Of a DNA stretch of 64,000 bases, positions 1 to 12,045 are shown piece after piece. Numbering within the stretch: position 1 is the stretch's first letter; every line of letters begins with the position of its first letter. The notes below the pieces were generated by a model. It was given only the letters and a program-made list of their open reading frames with translations, did not search any database and was not told the DNA's origin. The stretch is from positions 992,001 to 1,056,000 of the forward strand of contig OZ251241.1 of NCBI GenBank assembly GCA_965240325.2, read 5' to 3'. Made by a program: the position numbers and the translations under genes. Source of the DNA: Rebecca billardiae RCC1528 (taxonomy: Eukaryota > Protista > Haptophyta).

Positions 1-465
1 CCCCATCGGGCGCCTTAAGCCTCACTCCAGGATGGCGCCCTCGCTCGTCTCGGCCGAAAAAAGATGGCGGTGCAGAGCCCCGAGTTGAGCCGCGTGGCAA
101 CGGTCGATCTGGGCGGATATGCTGACCTTTTGGTGCCCCCGCGGCCGCGCCAGCCCGCGCCGCAAAACGGAACCGTTGGTTGCGAGGTCGACGGTTGGTC
201 TGTCCGTTACTCTCGTCGTCCTTAAAAAGTTACCCGCCGTGCGACTTGTGCGGGTACGGTGCCGGTTGAGAGGCCTTGGCCGTGGGGCGGCGGAGGGGCG
301 CGGCTGGGCCAAGCCGAAGGGGGGGACTCCGGCCCTTGGCTGGGCCGCGAGCCCGGGCGGCCGGCCGGTGGAACCCGAACACTGAACACGGAGCGGCCGG
401 TGACCACTTTCTTCTACTCGGCTTTTGAGCAGCAGTGGAACGGCGGAGTCGGGACTCCCAGCACC

Positions 466-2697
466 ATGCTCAGCGCGGTCGCGGTCGCGCTGTGTGTCGC
501 GGGCGCGGGGGCGGCGAGGGGTAGGGGCAACCTGCGTGACTCGAACGTGCCCACATCCGAGCAGTTCGCCACATTCAAGGGCAAGTTCGGTAAGAGCTAC
601 AACTCGCCCGCCGAGGAGGCGCAGGCGTTCGCAAACTGGCAGGTGAACGATGTGCTGATCGCCACGCACAACGAGCAGCCGCTGCCGTTCACGATTGGGC
701 ACAACAAGTTCTCGGACATGTCTCCGATGCAGGTGCGGCCCCCATCTCGCGGCGTGCACGCCGCGAGCGCGCCCACCCCTGCATCGCGGCGCGTGACGGT
801 CTGCGTGCGCGCGCCGCGCTGGTGCGCGCGCAGTTCCGCGAGGCCATGCTCACGCCTGACCTGTGGCGGCGCAAGATGGCGATGGACAAGGCGTCGCGTG
901 CGAAGGTGGCCGTGCACAAGAAGGGCGATTACGGGCTGCACGAGATGCTGCCGCAGTCCGTCGACTGGACAGCGATGAATGCGATCACCCAGATCGAGGA
1001 TCAGGGCATGGTGCGTGCGCGCGGCCGGCAGGTGGCGGGCGGAGGGCCGCGAGAGGCGAGGGCGTGCACAGGCACGCGGGCGAGCCAAGTGACGCGTGCG
1101 CCGCGCGCCGCCCCGTCTCGGCCCCCGCGCGCGCGCGTGCGCGCGCGCGCAGTGCGCTGGGTCTTGGGCCTTCTCTGCAGTGGCGTCGATCGAGAGCGCG
1201 CACTTCATCGCGCAGGGGATGAAGGAGGAGTACCCGGTGACGAAGGTCTCGCGGCAGCAGCTGCTCGACTGCGGCTACGGCCCGGCGGGCGCGACCTACT
1301 CCGACCACGGCTGCAAGGGCGGCCTGCCCGCGCACGGCTTTGGCTGGACCCAGATGCACGGCGGCCTCTGCACGGAGGCAGACTACCCGTTCCTCTCGTC
1401 GATGGGCTACCGGCACGCGTGCCGCGTGCGCTCGTGCCAGCAGGCGGTGACCGTGAGCGGGTTCAAGGACGTGCAGAAGTTCGACGAGGACGCGCTGCAG
1501 GACGCCGTCGCGCAGCAGCCCGTCACCGTCGCGATCGCCGCGTCGATGCCCGTCTTTCAGTTCTACGAGGGCGGCGTGTTTGATGATCCGCTCGGCAAGG
1601 CATCGGTTCTGGACCACACGATGGTGGTGGTCGGGTACGGCTCGACGACGGCGGGCGTGAACTACTGGAAGCTCAAGAACTCGTGGGGCACCACGTGGGG
1701 CATGGATGGGTACATGCTGCTCAAGCGCAACGTGAACATGTGCGGCATCGCCACCATGCCCGCGTATCCGATCGGCGTGAAGGTGGTGGAGCCAGATGCA
1801 GAGGCGCCCGTGCCCGAGCCGGCGACGAACAGGCGCGGGCACAACAAGCCGCTCGACCTGCAGCCCACGACTTACGACGGCGCGTGCGCCGTGCCAGCCG
1901 ACGGTGACGTCAAGCTCACCTCGTACCCCTCGGGCAACGTGCGCCGCCCGCGCCACGCTCCGCCACCACGCGCGCGCTTCGCGCGTGCGCGTGCGCGTGC
2001 GCCTGCGCCTGCGCCTGCGCCTGGCGGCAACTCGGCGCTCAGCCGCTCGGCACTCCGCCCGCGCCGCCCCACAGGTGCTGCTGTGGTACGACGGCGAATG
2101 GCACACGGTCTGCCAGGAGGCCGCGAACCCGATGTTTGCGTCGCAGGTGTGCAAGAGGCTCGGCTTCAAGCGCGTCGACTATCAGGGCGACAAGACGCAG
2201 GAGCGCAGGTTCCCCATGGTCTCGTCACCGCACTGCACCGGCACAGAGTCGTCGCTCAACGACTGCCGCTTCGACCAGGTGTACAAGAACGACAAATGCG
2301 ACACGTTCCGCAACATGCTCGCCATGTTCGTGACGTGCGCAGACGGCGAGATGACGGACTACGCGTTCCATTGCGGCTATCAGGCCAACGGTGCGCGCGA
2401 CGACAGCGAGCGCGTGGTGCGCGCGCATGTGATGGGCCGCGCTGACGCACACGCGCGCGTGCCGACCCTTTCCCGCGCCCTTGCGGAGCAGCTGGCACAG
2501 CTAGCTCGAGCGAGCTTCGGAACAGCGCGGCGGCCGCCACGGCGGGGCCGGTGGCATCAGCTCGGCATGTGGAGCTCACCGCGGTGCTGGCAGTGGCGGG
2601 CGTCCTGGCTGTGGCAGCCGGCGCGGCAATCGGCCGCCTTCTCGCCGCGCGGCGGCGCACGGCAAGTGGGGAGGCGCCTGCGCAGCCGCTCGCTTAG
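466..2697 (+). CDS. Papain-family (C1A, cathepsin L-like) protein with signal peptide, I29 prodomain, catalytic Cys->Ser substitution, SRCR domain and C-terminal TM helix; predicted exons 466-732, 834-1010, 1153-1938, 2075-2390, 2492-2697
   Basis: Spliced ORF reads MLSAVAVALCVAGAGA (signal), GHNKFSDMS (prodomain GNFD-like), LPQSVDW, DQGMCAGSWAFSA, GCKGG, LDHTMVVVGYG, YWKLKNSWGTTWGMDGY. SRCR-like segment GNVLLWYDGEWHTVC...QVCKRLGF...CTGTESSLNDC, then hydrophobic LTAVLAVAGVLAVAAGAAIG followed by RRR. All four introns are GT-AG and keep frame. Confidence 0.9.
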
Positions 2698-3234
2698 CTG
2701 TATTACAAATTGGGGGGTGCAGGCGAGTCGCGTGCCGCAGGGCAATGCCCTGCGTGCGCGGAGCGTGCCTGACCAGGGCAGCTTGGGTGCTCGCTGCTGC
2801 TGTGCTGAGGCACTTTGGCGGCGCCTCGGCTGGGTCTTAGTACTGTATTACAAGTACAACTACAAGGCGGTATGATCAATGATGAAGGTATTCGGTGGTT
2901 GCGCGGCGGCGGCGCTGTCGGAGCCCGGATATTATTGATGCCCGATATAGCGCGCTAGAATTAGTAGCTATAGATGAGTATATCCGTAGCACTAGCCACT
3001 AGCACTACTGACTACTCACTAGCAGTGTCAGAATCCGTAGTCCAATCTTAATCTTTATATCGTCTATTTTTTACAATAATTATGCGGCAATAAATTTATA
3101 ATGCGGGCGGCCGTGTGTTTACTGTGTTTACGTGACGAATTGACGTACACGTGCGTGTGACTGTGTGTGTGTGTGTGGTGTGTGAGTGAGTAAGTGAGTG
3201 ACCAGACTCACTGGGACAAAACGGGAGAGGCCCC

Positions 3235-4080
3235 CCGTTCTGAACGTTCTCCAAACGCGTTTGGGGCCTCGCCGTTCCGAACTGGTTTGCTGAACGGCTG
3301 AGTCAGGATCGCACATGAGTGGTCGGTTGTCATCCGGACTGCTAGCTGTAGACGCGCGACTGGCAGTCGCGGCGGGCTGTGCGCCGGCTGGCGCGCCTCG
3401 GTAGACGACGACGCGAGCGCTGACGGCCAGTCGTGGCGAGGAGGCCCTCAGGCCGACTTCATGGCTATGCTAGTGGCAATCAATGAGCTCAGCAGCGTGC
3501 TCGTCAGCAGCGCCGAGCCCGCGCCCGGCCCGGCGCATACGCCCACCTAGCGGCGAGGGGCTGCGGGCGGCGGCCGGAGCAGCCACGAGGCACGTTAGGC
3601 AGTCATAATAAGTATAGCTAACGCGCGCGATACAACCCGAACCGCCGCGGACTGGGCGGCGCCGCCGGCGCCGCCCGACCCGCCAGTGACCACGTCCGCA
3701 CTGACCGCGGACCGTGGTCCTGCGAGTGGCACGGCTGCACTGTTAGACTACTGAGTTGCCGCTGTTAGAGACCGTGGCTCGGAACTGCGTGTCTGACAAT
3801 CTGTATCACTGAGCGTACAACTCGGACAATTGACGTACGAATGACTTACTGACTAGAGTCGGCACGCCCCGACCGCCGCGGGCCAGGGCCGGGCATCGTC
3901 CGCTCCGGCCCGGCCGCCGCTGGCGGCGCCGGCCAGCCAGCCCGGGCTGCACCGGCCGGCGGCCTGCGGCCGGCACCGGCCGCCCGCCGGCAGTGGCGGC
4001 CGATGGAGGCCTGCCGCCGTTCTGAACGTTCTCAAATAACGCGTTTGGGGCCGCGCCGTTCCGAACGGTTTGCCAAACGC
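3235..4080. repeat. Dispersed ~62-bp direct repeat pair (about 3235-3296 and 4017-4079) in a non-coding spacer
   Basis: ccgttctgaacgttctccaaacgcgtttggggcctcgccgttccgaactggtttgc versus ccgttctgaacgttctcaaataacgcgtttggggccgcgccgttccgaacggtttgc; each has aattgacgtac upstream. Confidence 0.8.
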
Positions 4081-4453
4081 TCCCAGTCCCAGTCTGTGTG
4101 TGACTGATGACGCCTGCTAAGTTTGATTTTGAATAAACTGAAAGCCTTTTTACCCCTGCTTGCATGCGCAGCAGGATTACTCGTGAGCAGGAGTATATAT
4201 ATATTAATAATTATATATATATCCGTCATAATAATGTATTATGTGTCGTAATATTATATATATATAATATTGCGCTTATTATTGCTCGATGGCAATCAAT
4301 AATATGCTGAATATTATATATCATCAGCATCCGAATTATTATTGAAATTTTAATTCGGCGCTGCTGACTTGATCGCACGGGCCGCGCAGTGCCGCGCACG
4401 CAGGCGCTCACCCTTCGCAACTCAGTGCAGCTGCGATGCGCACGGTCCTGGTT

Positions 4454-6282
4454 TCATGTCGAGCCGAACTCCGCAGCCCAGGCCTCGTACTTGCTCGCGT
4501 CGACGGCTGTCGGCCTGGTGCGGCTCAGTGCCCGCGCGATGTCCTCGGCCGTCACCTTGCCGACCGGCGGCGGCGGATCGTGCTGGCCCGACTGCGCGCC
4601 CGCGACGGCCCCTCCGCCACGGCGTGCCGCGGCCCCTGGTGCGGTGGCCGCGCTGGCGGAGGCGTCGGCTTGCCGCGACACCTCGAGCTGAGTGAGTAGC
4701 CGGCGCAGCGGCGCCATGGCCGCCTCCTTGCATACCAAGACGAGGTCCGATCCCGAGTAGCCGTCCGTGCGCTCCGCCACCTCCGCAAGCCTGCATCCGT
4801 CCTCGATGCGCTCGGGCGTGAGCAGCTTGTTCAGGATCCAAAGGCGGCCGGATGGCCCTGGCCTGCAGGCGGCGCGAGGGCGGCGCGGCCGCGCGTGTGA
4901 GCGCGCGCCCAATGCTGGCTTCATCCGCAGCAAGATGAGCCTGCTTTGGCACTTCTCGCGTTGGCGCGCGCGCGCACGGGCACGTGCGCGCGCGCACACC
5001 TCGGCACGAGGATGCGCTTCTCGAGCCGGCGGAGCAGCGCGCCGTCGAGCTCCCACGGCAGGTTGGTCGCGCCGAGCACGAACGTGGGCCTCTGCCCGGG
5101 CGCGCCGGCGCTCGTTTGCAAGCCGTCCATCTGGACGAGGAGCTCCGTCTTCATGCGGCGCGAGCCCTCGTGCTCGCCGCCGTCGCCACGCTGGCTCATC
5201 AGCGAGTCGATCTCGTCGATGAAGACGGTCGACGGCGCGTGGTGCCGCGCGAGCTCGAAGAGCACGCGCACCAGCTTCTCCGAGTCGCCGCGCCACTTGG
5301 AGACGATCGTGGACGCGGACACGTTGAAGAAGGTCGTTTCGCACTCCGACGCGACGGCCTTGGCGAGCATCGTCTTGCCCGTGCCCGGCGGGCCGTAGAG
5401 CAGCACGCCGCGCCAGGGCGCGAGCAGCCCGGTGAAGTAGTCGGGGTATTTGAGCGGCAGCACCAGCGACTCCGAGAGCACGCGCTTCACGCCGTCGAGC
5501 TCGGCGATGTCCGACATGCCCACGTTTGGGTTTGCCTGCACGACATCGCGCATGAGCCAGCCGCCGAGATCGCGCAGCTCCGGGTGCATGTGGAAGTGCG
5601 GCGGGAGCGCCTTCTTGAGGCGGTTCTCCCACGTGCTCGCGCCGGGGCCGTCGGCGTCCTCCGCCGCCGCGTCCACCCCGCCCGCGCCCCCCGCCGCGCC
5701 GCCGGCGCCGCCGCCCGCGCCGCCGGCCGCCGTACCCACCAGCCCGAGACCGTCGACGCCGGCCGGAGCCGACGGGGCCGTGGGGGCCGAGCCGTTCGCC
5801 GCGGTGGCCTGGCGCGGCGGCTTGGCGGCCGCGCTTGGGCGCCCATTCCCGCTCGAGACGCGCCGCGCCGCCGCCGCGCCGCCGCCCGCACTCGCGTCGC
5901 CGGCGCCGGCGGCGCGGCGCTGCTCGATGGAGCCGTTGCTCGGGACGCGCGTCAGCGCCTTCTTGGCGGGAGCAGCGCCCGCGGCGCCGACGTCAACGCC
6001 CTGCCCCACGGCCTTCTTCACGAGCTTTGGCTTCCGGTCGAAGCGCATCTCGAAGTACGCCTCGTACTCCTGCACGATCGTCATCAGGTCGACGTTGTCA
6101 GCAACGACGTAGTCGGCAAGCTGCACGCCCGACTCGCTGGCCAGGGACTCGCACGCGCCGCGGTAGCCGTGGTCGAGGAGGTGGTACATGGTGAGCACGA
6201 TCAAATTCTTCCGACGCTCCGCCACGCGCCGCTCCTCCTGCTGCCGCGCCTCGGACTCAGCGCGGCTGCGCGCGCGCTCCAT
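4454..6282 (-). CDS. KATNAL2: Katanin p60 subunit A-like 2 (LisH + AAA ATPase); exons 6282-5000, 4862-4454
   Basis: N-terminal [19 protein letters not shown] (LisH, KATNAL2 type), Walker A GPPGTGKT, pore loop [10 protein letters not shown], Walker [49 protein letters not shown]-terminal [12 protein letters not shown]. Confidence 0.92.
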
Positions 6283-6456
6283 CGCTCCCGCGGCCGTTGC
6301 TCAACTGCGGACCGCCACGAAATCCGCCGAGCCGCGCCGAGCCGACTCCCACCAGGAGCTTGCACGATGGCTGCCCTGCATCTGACGCCCTTGCCTGTGG
6401 CTGCATCAGCATTTCGATTTTCGTCAGAGCCCGCCGGATAAGTTCGTCAAGGCTCG

Positions 6457-8427
6457 ATGTCCGACGAACACAGGCGGGCCATGCCCGTGCCCGACGAGGA
6501 CATGGCGGGGCCCAAGGCTGGGGGAGACGAGGGCTGCGAGAGCTACTACTTCCCGCTCGCGTATGGCCTCGTGTGCGCGCGCGACACTGCGCGGCGCTAC
6601 CTGCTCAAGCAGATCACCGTCACGACGGCGTGGATGCCCACAATCAGTGCGCGGCGCAAGCGCGTGCTCACGCGCTACTTTGAGCTGTGCTCGTTCTGCG
6701 GCGAGGAGCCATTCTACTTCCTCGCCGTGCCGGTGTACATGTGGTTTTGCGACTCTGGGAACGCGGTCCCCCTCGTCCTGCTCTTCCTCGCCAACATCTA
6801 CCTGGGCAACTGGCTGAAGAATCTATTTGGGCTGCCGAGGCCGCCGCCCGCGATGCGTTCTGCAAAGTGCAGTGACTATGGCTGGCCGTCGACGCACTCG
6901 ATGAACGCGGTGGCGCTCCCATTCTACCTGCTGCGCTGCGCCTTCCCGATCGCCGTGTGGGAGTACGAGCAGCCGTGGCGCATGTGGCTGTGCGGAGGTG
7001 CGAAGGCGGAGCGCGCGCGCGCGCGCTCCGCCCAGTGAGGCGCTCGGCCCTCTCAGCCGCGCCCTGCCGCACACCCGCTCGGCGCGCGCCTCCCGCAGCC
7101 GTGGCCACCACGTGGGCCCTCTCCGTCTCGCTCTCGCGCGTCTACCTCGGCGTGCACTCGCCAGCAGATGTACAGGTGAGAGCAGCTCGAGGTCGCGGCC
7201 TCTCAGCCACCGGCTGCGCCCGAGCCGACGCGCATGCTGCCACGCGTGCCGCCGAGCGCCTGCTGCGACTCACCGCCCGACTCCGCACACCGCGCTCGCC
7301 TGCGCGATCCGTGCGCGTGCCACAGGGCGGCATGATGATCGGTGCCGTCGTCCTCCGGCTCTGGCTCTCGGTGCACCGCTCGCTTCACCTGCTGGTCGTT
7401 GGCGCGGGCGTGGCCGAGGCCAGCGTTGTGGCGCACGGCGCGGCAGCGAGCGCGGCCAGCGCCGATGCGGAGCCGCCGTTCGGTTTTTTCCTCTGGCTCA
7501 CGCTGGGCGCGGTGCTGGCGATCATGGCGCACCCGGTTGTCTCGCCGCGCACGAACAGCTTCGCCGAGTCCGTCTCGACGGTCTCCTTCGGCTACGGCTT
7601 CATCGCGGGCACGCGGCTCGCGCGCGGCAACCTCGCTGTGGCGACCACTGCTGAGCACATGGGCGCGACCAACGTGCTGGCGTGCGTCGTGTCGGGCGGG
7701 CTCATCATCGGCGTGACGAAGATGATGTCGGGCTACATCGCGAGGTGCGCGCCGCGCTGCGGCACGGCTTGGCTGCCCGCTTCACACGCGCGAGAGCAGT
7801 CCCGCGCCTCCACGGCCATTCGCGCGCGCGCCCGGCGCGCGAGGCCTGACCGTGCGCCCCCGCCACGCGCGCCTCGCGTCTGGCGCCCCGCGGTGCTGCG
7901 CGTGCGCGCACGCAGCGCGATGATGCGCTACGGGCCCACGCGCCGGCTCGTGCACGCCCTGCTTGTCGGCCTGCCGCTCTGCGCGCTGCTCCGGTCGTGC
8001 GCGCTGGTGGATATTCCCACGAAGGGGGTACGCGCCGCACGCGCCCTCGAAGCGCGCCGCGGCCCGCTGCGCGAGCGCGATGGCTCACCCCTGCCCCGCG
8101 CCCGCCCCTTGGCCCCCATGCACCGCGCGCGCACACACGCAGGGGGCCTTGTTCACGTGCATGTGTGCAGCTGTCTACTGCTCCGAAGTCGGCGAGGGCA
8201 TGCTCTCGCCGCGCCCGGTGTCTGCGCCGAGCCGCTGGCCGGCGCCACAGCCGCCGAGGGCACTCCTGCGACGGCTCTCCTCCGGGGCCAGCAGCGCCGA
8301 CGCGCGCGAGCAGGCCGGTGGCGACAGCGTGGAGGAGGTGATCGGCCGGTTCATCAACTACGCGAGCTGTGGCCTCGCGCTCACGTTGGGTGTGCCAGCG
8401 GCTTTCAGCGCCCTCGGGCTGCGCTGA
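6457..8427 (+). CDS. PAP2-superfamily lipid phosphate phosphatase, sphingosine-1-phosphate phosphatase-like (about 5 exons)
   Basis: All three PAP2 motifs present: KNLFGLPRP, YGWPSTHS, SRVYLGVHSPAD. Also SFCGEEPFY and multiple TM segments. GT-AG introns at about 6998-7098, 7176-7325, 7745-7915, 8028-8142. Confidence 0.85.
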
Positions 8428-8693: not shown

Positions 8694-9788
8694 TCACTCG
8701 CCATACCACGCGGTCTCGTCGTCGACATTGCGCGTGGCGAACTCCGTCGCGAAGCACGTCGCGCCCAGCCCCTCGTCCCATCCCTCGAGCGGGGGCGCGC
8801 CGTCTGGTGGGCCGAGGCAGAAGACCGAAGTTCCCGAGCCGCTCATCATCGCAACCTTCCAGCCGCGCGAGCGCAGCTCGGCCTTGATGTCGTCGAGGCG
8901 GGGCAGCAGCGAGAGCGCGGGCGGCTCGAGGTCGTTCACGTACGCCCCCGCGTCGAGCAGCCCGCCCGGCGCGCGCATGCGCGAGAGCAGCTCGGTCGGC
9001 TCGGCGGTCGAAAGCGCGCCCAGGTCAAGGGTCTTATACACCAGGCCGGTCGAGAGGCCCTCGGGCGGCTTCAGGACGGTGATGGGGCACGGGCCGAGCG
9101 GCGGGAGCGACTCGATCTGCTCGCCGCGGCCGGTGCAGTACGCCGTGCCGGAGGAGAAGAAGAAGGAGATGTCCGAGCCCAACTCGCCGCCCCACTCGCG
9201 CAAGTCCGCCATCGAGGCCGGATAGCCAGCAAGCCGGTTGGCCGCAAACAGGGCCGCCGCCGCGTCCGCCGAGCCGCCGCCCATGCCCGCCTGCACGGGG
9301 ATGCGCTTGACGAGCTCGACGTGTACGGGCTGCTTCACGCCCGTCTTCTGCGAGAACAGCTCGAGCGCACGCAGCACGAGGTTCGACGAGTCGACGGGCA
9401 CCTCGGCCGCATCCGCCGCTGGCTCACCCTCGAGCATGATCGACATGGACGAGTGCGGCGCGTCGGCCGCGTCGAGGCGCCACACGCGCAGAGTGTCGCC
9501 GAGCGCGAGCGCCTGAAAGAGCGAGGCGAGCTCGTGGTAGCCGTCCTCCCGACGCCGCAGGATACGCAGGAAGAGGTTCACCTTTGATGGCGCGAGCACC
9601 TCGGCGTCCGGGCGTCGACCTGTCGGCACCGAGCTCGCGCGCACGGCGGCGCCCAGCCGCCCGCTGCGCCCAGCGGCTCGTGCCGAAAGAGCGCTATGCG
9701 TCACGTCGCCGGGCAGTGGCGCGAACGCTCCTGCTTCTGTCACCATCGCCGCCAGCGCCAGTAGCGCGCACATCGACGGCGACATCAT
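8694..9788 (-). CDS. ispE: 4-diphosphocytidyl-2-C-methyl-D-erythritol kinase (MEP pathway), plastid-targeted
   Basis: APSKVNLFLRILRRREDGYHELASLFQ, GHMP kinase motif KRIPVQAGMGGGSADAA, LGSDISFF, NDLEPPA, MMSGSGTSVF. Bipartite presequence (signal peptide then AGAFAP). Confidence 0.95.
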   Translation of the reverse strand: MMSPSMCALLALAAMVTEAGAFAPLPGDVTHSALSARAAGRSGRLGAAVRASSVPTGRRPDAEVLAPSKVNLFLRILRRREDGYHELASLFQALALGDTLRVWRLDAADAPHSSMSIMLEGEPAADAAEVPVDSSNLVLRALELFSQKTGVKQPVHVELVKRIPVQAGMGGGSADAAAALFAANRLAGYPASMADLREWGGELGSDISFFFSSGTAYCTGRGEQIESLPPLGPCPITVLKPPEGLSTGLVYKTLDLGALSTAEPTELLSRMRAPGGLLDAGAYVNDLEPPALSLLPRLDDIKAELRSRGWKVAMMSGSGTSVFCLGPPDGAPPLEGWDEGLGATCFATEFATRNVDDETAWYGE

Positions 9789-9999
9789 GGCCGGCGACGA
9801 CGACGCGATCTGTCGATCGCTAATGAGCGCGCGCACGAAACTCCGAAAATGGAAAATACTGGAAAATGGAATTTGCAGCGGCAAAACAAAATGGCGGTCG
9901 TTCAAAACTCAAAAGCTTGCACTGGCGGATCCTCACCTGCTGCTCGGAGCGCGGGCCGCGCGTTAGAGCTTGCCGGCCGCCGCCTCGCCCGCGGGCACG

Positions 10000-11701
10000 A
10001 TGGCGGCGAATGAGGAGTTGCGGCCGATGTTCTGCGACCGGTTCAGCGATTTGGAGGCGATGTACACCGTCGGGCGCAAGCTCGGCGTGGGCAACTTCGC
10101 CAAGGTCGTGCAGGCGAGCACCAACATGGACATGCCTCAGCACGGCCTGAAGGCGGGCGCGCAGGTGGCGATCAAGATCGTCAAGAAGCCGAGCCGCGCG
10201 TCGGTGGACAAGCTCGAGATGCTGCAGGCGGAAATCGACGTGCTCCGCACCATCGAGCACCCCAACCTCGTCCGGCTGTACGAGGTGCATGAGACGGCCG
10301 CGAAGCTGTATCTCGTGATGGAGCTGTGCACGGGCGGCGAGCTCTTCGACAAGATCGTCACGCTGGGCAAGTACACGGAGGAGGACGCGCGCTACTTCAC
10401 GTTCAAGCTGCTCAACGCCGTGCTGTACCTCCACGACAAGAAGATCTGCCACCGCGACCTCAAGCCCGAGAACATCCTGCTCAGCTCGGCGCGCGCCGAC
10501 GCCGAGCTCAAGATCTCCGACTTTGGGCTCAGCCGGATCACGATGGGCAACGGCATGCGCGAGCAGATGCTGCACACGCGGTGCGGCACGCCGGGGTACG
10601 CGGCGCCCGAGGTGCTCGTCTCCGAGCGCGAGACCGGCTCGGGCGGGCGCAACTACGGCCTCGCGTGCGACATGTGGGCGGTCGGCGTGATCACGTACAT
10701 CTTGCTGTGCGCCTCGCCGCCGTTCCACGGCAAGACGGATGCGGAGATGAACGCCAAGGTGAAGCGCGGCGAGTTCGCGTTCCCCGAGCGGTACTGGGGG
10801 CACATCTCGGACTCGGCGAAGGACTTCATCTCCAAGCTCCTCGCCGTCGACCCCGCGAGGCGGCTCACCGCCATGGAGGCGCTGCAGCACGACTGGACGA
10901 CCTCAATCGGCGTGCACACACTCGACCTGCTCGGCCCCGCGTCGCTCTCGCAGGCGGCGTCGGTGCTCACGGCGGACGGGGGCACGGCGAGCTCGACGTT
11001 CCGCGGGCGCATGGGCGCGCTCGCGCGCGAGCGCCGCGCACACCCGGGCCGCGAGCTGCAGGAGCTCCTCGGCCTCCCAGCCGACGAGGAGGTGAGGCGC
11101 GCGCGGACGCGGGCGCGCGCCCGGCGCCGGCGCGCGCGGCGCGTTGTCGGCCGCCGCCGCGCGATCGCGCGATCGCGCCGCGCGCGCCCGCCGCGGCGCG
11201 CTCGGCACGTGCTCGGCCGCCGCCGCGCGATCGACCGCGCGCGCGTGCTCCGCGCGCGAGCGCGGCCGTGCGCCTGCTCAGCGCGGCACCGTGACCCCCG
11301 TTCGCCCGCGCCGCGGCCGGGCGGCGCAGGAGCTCGATCGCTTCCGCTGCACGCACGCGGAGGTGCACGGCGTGCTCCTGATCACGCAGTCCAACGTCGC
11401 GTTCCTCTCGACGACGGAGACGGAGATGGTCGTCCTGCCCGTGCACGCCGTGGTCGCCGTCCGCACCACGCGGTACCAGAAGTGGAACACGCACTCGGAC
11501 AACTCGCTGATGCTCCGGATGGAGAGCGGCAAGACCGAGCAGTTCGACGGCTTCTGGGAGCGCGACGAGTGCCTCAACCTCATCCTCGCAGCGGGACGCT
11601 TCTGTGGGCACACCATCGCGGTGGAGACAGACGGCGAGGACGCGCCGAGCGCGGGCGCCGGCGCTCGCGCGACGCCCTCCAAATCCACGGCCGCGAGCTA
11701 A
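10000..11701 (+). CDS. CAMK-group Ser/Thr protein kinase with C-terminal GRAM (PH-like) domain; exons 10000-11091, 11330-11701
   Basis: LGVGNFAKV, VAIKIVKK, HPNLVRL, MELCTGGELFDKI, HRDLKPEN, DFG, CGTPGYAAPE. After splicing: LLGLPADEEELDRFRC...HGVLLITQSNVAF...FDGFWERDECLNLI, a GRAM-like pattern. Confidence 0.88.
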
Positions 11702-12045
11702 CACAGTCGTCACATGCTGCCGCGGGCGCGGTTACCGAGACGTAACAGGATAGCCGATGCTCGATAGTCGTCGCGCTCGAGTCCACTGCTCGCGACCGGC
11801 AGCGGTGCCTCTCCAGCTCTAGTGGCTCTAGTGAGTAGTGCGCCCTGCCCGCGCATGCCGCCTGTGCGGCTCATCCGACGAGTCATCTGAGTAGTCACTC
11901 TGACTACAAAGTTCGTCCCGCGCGGGACTCGGGTACGGGGTAGTGTCGGGGACCCCTGCAATTTGGCGCCTGCAATCCTGCATCATAGCCGTAGGCTCCG
12001 TGGAAACGTTGGTCGTTTTTCGGGCGGAGGGCGGGAACGAGCATC

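Follow-up and report, generated by a model that had tools for sequence, protein, structure and literature searches.

To our knowledge, natural homologues of papain in which serine replaces the nucleophilic cysteine are few, comprising the silicateins, the Ser-type SERA proteins and a few animal proteins. Laboratory Cys-to-Ser mutants of papain-fold proteins are inactive and serve as substrate traps. The PDB entry 7Q8G describes cathepsin V C25S crystallised with a bound peptide. Plasmodium SERA5, which carries Ser596, has no detectable protease activity, but gains it when this Ser is changed to Cys; the Ser-to-Ala change gives no phenotype, and the question of the SERA5 Ser has been settled only genetically (PMC4671257). 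Within what the two sources describe, the Ser form of SERA lacks detectable protease activity yet can bind peptides (PMC4671257; PMC7132891). In silicateins the active-site motif is A-S-Y, and whether its Ser is catalytic is still argued (PMC6233156).

We analysed a 64,000-nt stretch of the Rebecca billardiae RCC1528 genome (hereafter the window). Sequence reading and exon translation revealed an intact five-exon gene at 466-2697 on the plus strand, whose product is predicted to be a type I membrane protein of a pavlovophyte haptophyte related to Diacronema lutheri. Its parts follow the order signal peptide, I29 propeptide, C1A domain, linker, SRCR domain and transmembrane (TM) anchor. Queries taken from the window were single exons or the stop-free ORF 1096-2442, whereas P0001-P0003 served for comparisons over the full length. 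The features are as follows.

466-732, plus strand: exon 1, with the start codon, a signal-like N-terminus (about 466-519) and the bulk of the I29 propeptide, in which a GxNxFxD-like motif and a helix of ERFNIN type are recognisable (translation; Pfam Inhibitor_I29)
733-833, plus strand: intron 1, 101 nt, GTGCGG...CAG, its join confirmed because the exons tile P0002 and P0003, both derived from transcripts, without a gap
834-1010, plus strand: exon 2, with the propeptide end, the mature N-terminus LPQSVDW, the oxyanion Gln (1002-1004) and a terminal Q-G-M
912-935, plus strand: VHKKGDYG, a dibasic motif at the propeptide/mature junction and a candidate site of processing in trans
1011-1152, plus strand: intron 2, 142 nt, phase 0, between the Met and the Cys of C-A-G-S
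1153-1773, plus strand: C1A domain, residues 1-207 of exon 3 (1153-1938), with Ser replacing the nucleophile Cys (Pfam, phmmer on PDB, AF2, Foldseek)
1162-1164, plus strand: TCT, encoding Ser in place of the catalytic Cys, next to an Ala (1156) and a Gly (1159) that are fixed in the clade
1252-1254, plus strand: Arg, invariant in the Ser clade, replacing a Glu found in 99% of 169 Cys-type relatives
1615-1617, plus strand: CAC, His at the catalytic position, followed by Thr (phmmer against actinidin and dionain)
1678-1680, plus strand: AAC, Asn at the catalytic position, within K-N-S-W-G (phmmer against actinidin and dionain)
1774-1938, plus strand: low-confidence linker (pLDDT 35-61), then C-x-x-P-x-D-G-D-V-K-L, the first SRCR strand, at the end of exon 3
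1939-2074, plus strand: intron 3, 136 nt, with a GCGCGT/GCGCCT microsatellite
2075-2390, plus strand: exon 4 (phase 1), with the SRCR domain and a conserved Cys-containing extension, C-A-D-G-E-M...H-C-G-Y (Pfam; ortholog alignment)
2391-2491, plus strand: intron 4, 101 nt, its acceptor chosen by us, the ortholog tails being too divergent to confirm it
2492-2697, plus strand: exon 5, with a Ser/Ala-rich stalk, TM segment (about 2575-2649), RRR stop-transfer (2650-2658), a tail ending P-L-A, and the stop codon

All four introns begin with GTGCG and end with AG, the splice sites are canonical, and translation of the exons gave no in-frame stop. The exons tile the orthologs with neither gap nor overlap, exon 1 as far as residue 61 of P0001; the intron 4 acceptor and exon 5 stand without direct ortholog support. 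The position of intron 2 is common to the window, Diacronema (L031), the environmental contig L120 and a retained intron of P0004, and intron 3 is missing from Diacronema, where its two exons are contiguous. At the propeptide junction VHKKGDY is identical in the window, P0001-P0003 and L120, with the final Gly turned into Asp in L120, and P0004 reads MHKKGDYG. Residues 1-15 are signal-peptide-like (hydropathy 2.13), and exon 4 is 60-72% identical to the orthologs. Exon 5 encodes a 19-residue stretch with a mean hydropathy of 2.4, followed by RRR; a C-terminal hydrophobic stretch followed by basic residues occurs in every full-length ortholog. Exon 5 and its TM segment are thus putative, resting on a chosen splice site and on analogy with the orthologs.

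Pfam searches with single exons identified Inhibitor_I29 (PF08246) of the cathepsin-L type in exon 1 (47.8 bits, E 1.8e-12), Peptidase_C1 (PF00112) in exon 3 (180 bits against a cut-off of 20.7, E 8.5e-53) and SRCR (PF00530) in exon 4 (45.8 bits against a cut-off of 26.1, E 8.3e-12), together with weaker exon 4 matches to SRCR_2 (5.9e-7) and Hepsin-SRCR (0.0025, weak). The SRCR cysteine pattern is present, with seven Cys in exon 4 and one upstream in exon 3. The catalytic domain is that of PF00112, and the window exons gave no Pfam match to the trypsin family (S1, chymotrypsin fold). Consistently, phmmer on PDB matched the C1A domain to actinidin at 1e-42, its AF2 model has a mean pLDDT of 86 (exceeding 90 across most of its length), and Foldseek superposed it on papain-like proteases with TM scores of 0.81-0.84 and rmsd of 1.5-1.7 A. 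The papain fold is intact in the predicted model, and by fold and sequence the window protein is a C1A homologue, not a cysteine peptidase.

The motif Q-G-M followed by C-A-G-S-W-A-F-S straddles the exon 2/exon 3 join, with the Ser codon itself within exon 3, and phmmer aligned this Ser on the catalytic Cys of actinidin and dionain. The oxyanion Gln, the His, the Asn and the Trp after the Asn are all retained. The nucleophile motif is G-S-C in the 169 aligned Cys-type relatives, every one of which has the catalytic Cys, versus a fixed A-G-S in the Ser clade; the residue after the catalytic His is Thr in the window versus Gly in 88% of relatives. These substitutions, namely G to A, S to G, Glu to Arg and the one that follows the His, are fixed in the clade and concentrate around the active site. 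Of the three disulfides typical of papain, two remain. The third, which adjoins the catalytic His, is lost: its Cys at exon-3 residue 148 (nt 1594), 100% conserved in the 169 relatives, gives way to Gly in the window and to Ala, Ser or Gly in orthologs, and the partner Cys (residue 197, nt 1741) survives within the Ser clade in the window alone. A sequence-only reading of this DNA had noted Ser for Cys at an exon-internal TCT, the retained Gln, His and Asn, a prodomain, and an SRCR domain followed by a C-terminal TM helix with a basic stop-transfer, all of which the translation, the phmmer alignments and the Pfam matches bear out; it had also taken the disulfide cysteines to be retained, which the Gly at nt 1594 contradicts.

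Ser occupies the nucleophile position in six lineages, namely the window, D. lutheri KAG8463282.1, two transcript-derived proteins and two environmental contigs. The Diacronema ortholog is in the database only as an unnamed 'SRCR domain-containing protein', and the whole architecture is carried by two intronless sequences, transcript contigs or MMETSP transcript. The codons listed (TCT, TCG, TCG, TCC and TCG) include three different ones across lineages, and a crude dN/dS over the exon 3 region (C1 domain plus linker) was about 0.36-0.38. Because Ser is found in six lineages with three codons, it is real and under selection. That the codon is a sequencing error, the gene model mis-joined or the gene a decaying pseudogene is extremely improbable: independent assemblies and transcripts of five other lineages have Ser, the tiling, open frame and splice sites are in order, dN/dS is below 1 and the predicted fold is confident, while nothing was found in its favour beyond the lack of direct ortholog support for the intron 4 acceptor and exon 5. 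An error at the codon or wrong exons 1-4 are refuted by the orthologs, the tiling and dN/dS.

The 185 closest database relatives all have the catalytic His and Asn; Cys is the nucleophile in 176 of them, and Ser was found only in the four orthologs and one beetle protein. Among 80 environmental relatives, 79 have Cys and one Gly. Since Ser is so rare in both censuses, its chance occurrence is not an issue. The metagenome scan with the family profile that supplied these 80 environmental loci, all of them ordinary cathepsin-L-like genes, revealed no additional C1A-SRCR gene, and a profile word search scored 8000 candidates and found no new member of the architecture. The best 150 matches of a HMMER search with the SRCR subtype were mostly multi-SRCR proteins with summed scores, the only single-domain match among them being the P0003 cluster (232 bits); this supports a rare SRCR subtype and is silent on distant Cys-type C1A-SRCR proteins.

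The R. billardiae genome has five C1A-SRCR paralogs, of which two are Cys-type, two Ser-type and one Gly-type, a family that was not part of the sequence-only reading. We define pavlovophyte C1A-SRCR genes by a C1A domain, then C-x-x-P-x-[DE]-G-D-[VI]-[KQ]-L, then SRCR, all in one gene; besides the window gene, this mark is found in L120, in four orthologs from databases and at another four loci in the R. billardiae genome. Judged from these sequences, the family is lineage-restricted. The Cys-type paralogs lie at:

G000:C20:1588170-1589617, minus strand: Cys-type paralog C20
G000:C10:1814388-1815604, plus strand: Cys-type paralog C10

Both have the same order as the window gene (I29, C1A, C-x-x-P motif, SRCR) and fall in the same tree region, and C20, like the window, has a TM-like segment downstream. 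Unlike the window gene, they retain G-S-C-W together with the full Cys pair of the third disulfide, and VHKKGDYG is not in C10a, the only Cys-type paralog with the junction recovered. They are presumably true cysteine proteases, and the S2-type residues of the Ser clade resemble theirs. A common Cys-rich insertion and a common intron position suggest that the paralogs C17 and C10b are sisters, a relation that the tree, in which different single-exon fragments were entered, does not show. The Gly paralog retains both His and Asn, so the retention of these residues is no proof of catalysis.

The strictly kept Ser (6/6), with its synonymous turnover and the invariant Ala, Gly and Arg beside it, looks like selection on the hydroxyl itself at the level of sequence. 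This pattern counts against a pseudoprotease and bears on its main rival, a working Ser-His-Asn hydrolase whose nucleophile loop has been re-tuned on the papain scaffold for a hydroxyl nucleophile, acting as a slow protease, an esterase/amidase or another acyl- or heteroatom-transfer enzyme. Such an enzyme would fit a Ser that is invariant across six lineages despite codon changes, substitutions in the loop, at the Glu and after the His that are fixed rather than drifting, the retained Gln, His, Asn and Trp, S2-type residues like those of the Cys paralogs, and purifying selection on the domain. However, papain-fold Cys-to-Ser proteins are generally inactive and used as substrate traps, cathepsin V in entry 7Q8G being one so described. 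SERA5 moreover shows the same conservation pattern without enzymatic need (PMC4671257), the His and Asn persist in a sister-type paralog with Gly, and the disulfide adjoining the His is lost. We regard the hydrolase as a possible but clearly less probable explanation. More speculative still is the bolder proposal that a papain fold became, for a second time and separately from the sponge silicateins, a genuine Ser-His-Asn catalyst displayed at the algal cell surface; the fixed A-G-S loop, the Glu-to-Arg switch and the Ser-Tyr pair in two lineages would be its marks, and a non-peptide or activated substrate its target, a combination that we consider doubtful as a whole.

The window protein is most likely a pseudoprotease rather than a Ser-nucleophile hydrolase. 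Specifically, with a probability of roughly 0.55, we propose a peptide-binding pseudoprotease of the cell surface or the endomembranes, comparable by analogy to Plasmodium SERA5, because of the SERA5 and C25S precedents and because the Gly paralog keeps His and Asn. With a pure binding role, however, Ala or Gly should be tolerable at the Ser position, and the retention of Gln, His, Asn and the Trp after the Asn also speaks against it. In the proposed mechanism, cleavage in trans at the conserved HKK|GDYG junction would release the propeptide, and the ectodomain would keep its peptide-binding cleft while cutting peptides very slowly or not at all. It may thus serve as a binding or recognition module at the cell surface or in an endomembrane compartment, with the SRCR domain as a membrane-proximal stalk, and might partner with or regulate the Cys-type paralogs.

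The tree placed the window clade (96/84) beside the algal C1A-SRCR paralogs, and the sponge cathepsins L P0018, P0091 and P0100, which stood in for silicateins, inside the starred metazoan clade. A word search with the Ser-Tyr active-site region of P0003 returned only orthologs and no silicatein. Since the clade sits with algal paralogs and away from the sponge cathepsins L, this indirectly indicates, by way of those stand-ins, that the Ser clade arose independently of silicateins. We know of no silicification and no silica or mineral scales in pavlovophytes, which weighs against a silicatein-like mineral or scale-forming enzyme, as do the tree, a membrane anchor and SRCR stalk unlike the filament-forming silicateins, and a Diacronema genome paper without anything of the kind. 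The residue after the Ser is Trp in the window, Diacronema, P0002 and L120, and this too argues against such an enzyme. The Ser-His-Asn triad is as in silicateins, and P0003 and P0004 have Tyr after the Ser, giving a C-A-G-S-Y close to the silicatein A-S-Y, but the catalytic-triad mechanism is disputed for silicatein itself (PMC6233156). We therefore hold a mineral function to be highly unlikely. Among the three functions that the sequence-only reading had offered, the pseudoprotease is thus favoured and the hydrolase keeps a place, while the mineral or scale-related enzyme is not supported, given the tree and the Trp. Its remark that the architecture was not known as described is matched by the literature searched on silicatein in haptophytes, on papain-like domains with SRCR and on the Diacronema genome, in which we found nothing on a protein of the window type and no paper on the I29/C1A/SRCR/TM build.

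The locus would add an independent Cys-to-Ser case in a free-living alga, and it provides an example of a papain-type fold carried on a membrane-anchored SRCR stalk, in parallel to the hepsin/TMPRSS design. With Cys, Ser and Gly paralogs of the same build side by side in one genome, and with six Ser orthologs, it has built-in controls, so that Ser chemistry in a papain active site can be tested by simple swaps. The practical stakes are modest.

Compared with known systems, sponge silicateins resemble the window clade as cathepsin-L-like C1A proteins with a Cys-to-Ser change and small residues before the Ser, and their Tyr after the Ser is matched in two orthologs (P0003 and P0004); however, they read G-A-S-Y where the window reads A-G-S-W, and the window protein is membrane-anchored with an SRCR domain. 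The type II transmembrane serine proteases hepsin and TMPRSS2 likewise hold a protease fold on a membrane SRCR stalk, but theirs is a chymotrypsin (S1) fold in type II orientation and that of the window a papain (C1A) fold in type I, so the likeness is one of analogy only. In SERA5-type proteins, as in the window protein, Ser occurs naturally at the position of the papain nucleophile and the His and Asn are retained, and the SERAs, like the window family, form a multigene set of mixed Cys (SERA6) and Ser members. They belong to an unrelated lineage and are soluble vacuolar proteins without SRCR or TM anchor; none is among the 185 closest relatives, and the resemblance is a functional analogy only. 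Engineered C25S cathepsins, although laboratory mutants without the clade-fixed active-site changes, SRCR domain or TM segment, have the same fold and the same substitution as the window protein, a likeness of fold and sequence to proteins that, as entry 7Q8G describes for cathepsin V, bind peptides without cleaving them.

Reading of positions 1-3600 and their translation defined a five-exon gene at 466-2697 in the window, whose DNA is eukaryotic and about 70% G+C.

466-732, plus strand: exon 1, with a hydrophobic signal-like segment at its start and the cathepsin-L-type propeptide (Inhibitor_I29, Pfam on the single exon, 1.8e-12)
834-1010, plus strand: exon 2, ending in Q-G-M
1153-1938, plus strand: exon 3, opening with C-A-G-S-W-A-F-S and carrying the papain-family domain (Peptidase_C1, Pfam, 8.5e-53)
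2075-2390, plus strand, phase 1: exon 4, SRCR (Pfam, 8.3e-12), with weaker SRCR_2 and Hepsin-SRCR matches
2492-2697, plus strand: exon 5, 19 hydrophobic residues (mean hydropathy 2.4), then RRR and a short tail

The introns measure 101, 142, 136 and 101 nt, and all four read GTGCG...AG. Database queries were individual exons or the stop-free ORF 1096-2442, and full-length comparisons were made via database orthologs. The product is a type I membrane protein with the SRCR domain placed between the papain fold and the membrane. AlphaFold2 modelled the exon 3 product with a mean pLDDT of 86 over the C1 domain (most blocks above 90) and a disordered linker; the model superposed on papain-like proteases with TM scores of 0.81-0.84 and an rmsd of 1.5-1.7 A; as modelled, the papain fold is intact. 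Intron 3, which the Diacronema gene lacks, holds a short GCGCGT/GCGCCT hexamer microsatellite (1975-2030). Right after the stop codon, 2850-3190 is A+T-rich by this genome's standard, probably representing 3' UTR or intergenic DNA; a (TG)n run comes next (about 3150-3185).

Comparison with actinidin and dionain (phmmer) aligned the Ser codon TCT at 1162-1164 with the catalytic Cys, and His 1615-1617 and Asn 1678-1680 with the catalytic His and Asn; the oxyanion Gln lies at 1002-1004. Word searching from the C1 region, with the long ORF as query so that longer proteins could enter, recovered four proteins of the I29, C1 and SRCR build with 57-65% identity to the window protein: P0001 from Diacronema lutheri (KAG8463282.1), a member of the Pavlovophyceae, named in the database only 'hypothetical protein / SRCR domain-containing protein'; P0002, an uninterrupted 1800-nt CDS on two JGI contigs taken for transcripts; P0003, an MMETSP transcript; and P0004, a Logan contig retaining the intron before the nucleophile-loop Cys. 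A fifth relative, on the contig encoding P0017 (L120), was read by hand. All carry Ser at the nucleophile position, encoded by TCT in the window, TCG in Diacronema, P0002 and L120, and TCC in P0004, and followed by Tyr in P0003 and P0004 and by Trp in the others, including the window. Such synonymous turnover at a conserved residue, seen in assemblies and transcripts of independent origin, rules out sequencing error and, at the level of codon comparison, shows that the Ser is kept under selection. The sequence-only reading had proposed looking for this Ser in orthologs, and every one has it, with differing codons.

The window exons tile the orthologs with zero gap or overlap (for instance P0001 residues 1-61, 62-120, 121-381 and 382-485), which supports the first three exon joins and places the SRCR domain in the same transcript, as its proposed fusion to the C1A gene implied. 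Exon 5 is too divergent for such tiling; all full-length orthologs end in a hydrophobic segment and then basic residues. Crude Nei-Gojobori dN/dS, at a GC3 of about 0.9, came to 0.36-0.38 over the C1 domain and linker (exon 3 region) and to 0.27-0.57 over the exon encoding SRCR. The motif VHKKGDY is identical in the window, P0001-P0003 and L120, with Met for Val in P0004; L120 has Asp in place of the final Gly of VHKKGDYG. A 249-residue minus-strand ORF without a Pfam match (L119:9221-9970; G000:C24:991221-991970) lies immediately upstream of the window and has a counterpart adjoining the Diacronema ortholog (L031 1258-2070; best tblastx segment 44% identity over 138 aa), microsynteny supporting the orthology of the two genes. 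The downstream neighbours, identified by ORF and Pfam, have no obvious functional link to the Ser-type cathepsin gene.

4921-6279, minus strand: AAA ATPase (2.7e-40)
8694-9902, minus strand: GHMP kinase (8.5e-15)
9970-11742, plus strand: protein kinase (3.8e-68)

The window gene and its Ser-bearing orthologs (the Ser clade) were compared with 169 relatives that keep the catalytic Cys. The coordinates given by the sequence-only reading proved exact, but the disulfide cysteines it took as retained do not include the third papain disulfide: the Cys just before the His, present in 169/169 Cys-type relatives, has given way to Gly in the window protein and to Ala, Ser or Gly among the orthologs, and its partner Cys is kept within the clade by the window alone. 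Of 73 alignment columns with at least 85% conservation among the Cys-type relatives, the clade retains 44, and the departures invariant within it concentrate at the active site. The nucleophile loop G-S-C is fixed as A-G-S, a Glu 99%-conserved in the Cys-type relatives is Arg (nt 1252), and the Gly after the His is Thr, Val or Ala; loss of the third disulfide, close to these changes, belongs to the same cluster. Since new states are fixed within the clade, the alignment pattern is not that of neutral decay; the window active site is remodelled yet conserved and Ser-bearing. The strictly retained Ser and the fixed changes around it sustain the main rival reading, a true Ser-His-Asn hydrolase, which we hold possible though doubtful. 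Among the 185 closest database relatives, all of which keep His and Asn, the nucleophile is Cys in 176 and Ser in 5 (four of them the orthologs, the fifth from a beetle); 80 environmental cathepsin-L-like loci gave 79 Cys and one Gly. The beetle Molorchus minor protein P0121 (681 aa) has a natural Ser in C-I-A-S-W-A-F, and metagenome contig L112 (Ga0194128_10176574) reads Q-C-N-S-G-W-A-F, with a Gly nucleophile and an in-frame stop slightly downstream.

Scanning the 72-Mb genome (41 contigs; window at C24:992001-1056000), with PF00112 and PF00530 and next with an ortholog, revealed five genes in which C1A is followed by C-x-x-P-x-[DE]-G-D-[VI]-[KQ]-L and then SRCR.

C24, plus strand: window gene, C-A-G-S-W, Ser
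C17, about 500.4-503.8 kb (L035, G000:C17:496000-505999, ~4100-7820), plus strand: second Ser-type gene, C-A-S-S-W, Ser (TCG)
C10, about 1566 kb (L038, G000:C10:1563500-1569500, ~2190-3765), minus strand: C-A-S-G-W, within K-C-A-S-G-W-A-F, Gly (GGC)
C20, about 1588-1590 kb (L036, G000:C20:1585500-1592500), minus strand: C-G-S-C-W, Cys
C10, about 1814-1816 kb (L037, G000:C10:1811500-1818500), plus strand: C-G-S-C-W, Cys

The C17 copy has a signal-like start, an I29-like region, the active site Q-G-A-C-A-S-S-W-A-F, a Cys-rich insertion (C-L-C-C-G-G-T-F-G-L) and an SRCR-like module; the Gly copy has this insertion too, and in both genes an intron falls at the same place, ahead of the Gly of Q-G. 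Both Cys copies, presumably active membrane-anchored cysteine proteases, retain the third disulfide, and TM-like segments follow SRCR in the C20 and Gly copies. In L037 an intron interrupts the active-site motif directly after Trp; VHKKGDYG is absent from this gene, the sole Cys paralog whose propeptide junction was recovered (that of C20 was not). The Gly copy keeps His and Asn, so within this family the presence of those two residues cannot, on sequence grounds, be taken as a sign of catalysis. Pro-Leu-Ala closes the cytosolic tails of the window protein (2680-2697), P0001 and the C17 paralog (L035 ~7800-7818), perhaps as a sorting signal, perhaps by coincidence; P0002 and P0003 have other endings.

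An IQ-TREE phylogeny (LG+C20; 43 rows, 220 columns) was built from window exon 3, the C1 regions of database proteins and paralog pieces of one exon each, leaving out silicateins (sponge silica enzymes with a Ser nucleophile), the intron-split L120, L009 and paralog fragments below 100 residues, except a 64-residue C17 piece. The window and four orthologs formed a starred clade (96/84) with the Gly copy as sister (91/82); the remaining C1A-SRCR paralogs lay close by, in a part of the tree that was poorly resolved. A separate group (90/84) united plant, protist and animal cathepsins L, with sponge cathepsins L inside its starred metazoan clade. Since silicateins derive from sponge cathepsin L (PMC6233156), the algal Ser is, on this topology with sponge cathepsins L standing in for silicateins, an event independent of silicateins.

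No further Ser-clade members emerged from a profile word search (8000 candidates scored), an active-site word search, a metagenome scan or the matches listed by an exhaustive HMMER search with an SRCR-subtype profile, among which the P0003 cluster was the only single-domain match. Because multi-SRCR proteins dominated that list and the word search scored 8000 candidates, we regard restriction of the clade to Pavlovales-like algae only as likely. A literature search found no paper on these C1A-SRCR proteins, which sit unnamed in public databases, in agreement with the impression that the architecture was undescribed. A natural Cys-to-Ser papain homologue is already known as a kind; new here are the lineage, the C1A-SRCR-TM build and its Cys/Ser/Gly series.

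The mineral or scale enzyme that the sequence-only reading had also entertained is very improbable: Trp follows the Ser in the window, the protein is membrane-anchored and the host class of Rebecca billardiae is not known to silicify. Even for silicatein, the triad mechanism is under dispute (PMC6233156). We favour, at a probability of roughly 55%, a window protein whose cleft binds peptides but cleaves them very slowly or not at all. This peptide-binding reading draws on the Gly paralog that keeps His and Asn and on two precedents. According to its title, PDB entry 7Q8G is a crystal structure of cathepsin V C25S with a peptide bound. For SERA5, a Plasmodium pseudoprotease with a natural Ser, protease activity was not detectable in parasite-derived or recombinant protein, Ser-to-Cys made it active, and the parasite tolerated Ser-to-Ala (PMC4671257). 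The ectodomain cleft would then hold peptides, with cleavage absent or very slow, and the conserved dibasic VHKKGDYG junction suggests that the propeptide could be removed in trans. The presence in one genome of Cys paralogs built identically further suggests that the Ser form may act as their partner or regulator, in the manner of the enzyme and pseudoenzyme pairs of other families, to which we liken the Cys and Ser paralogs here.
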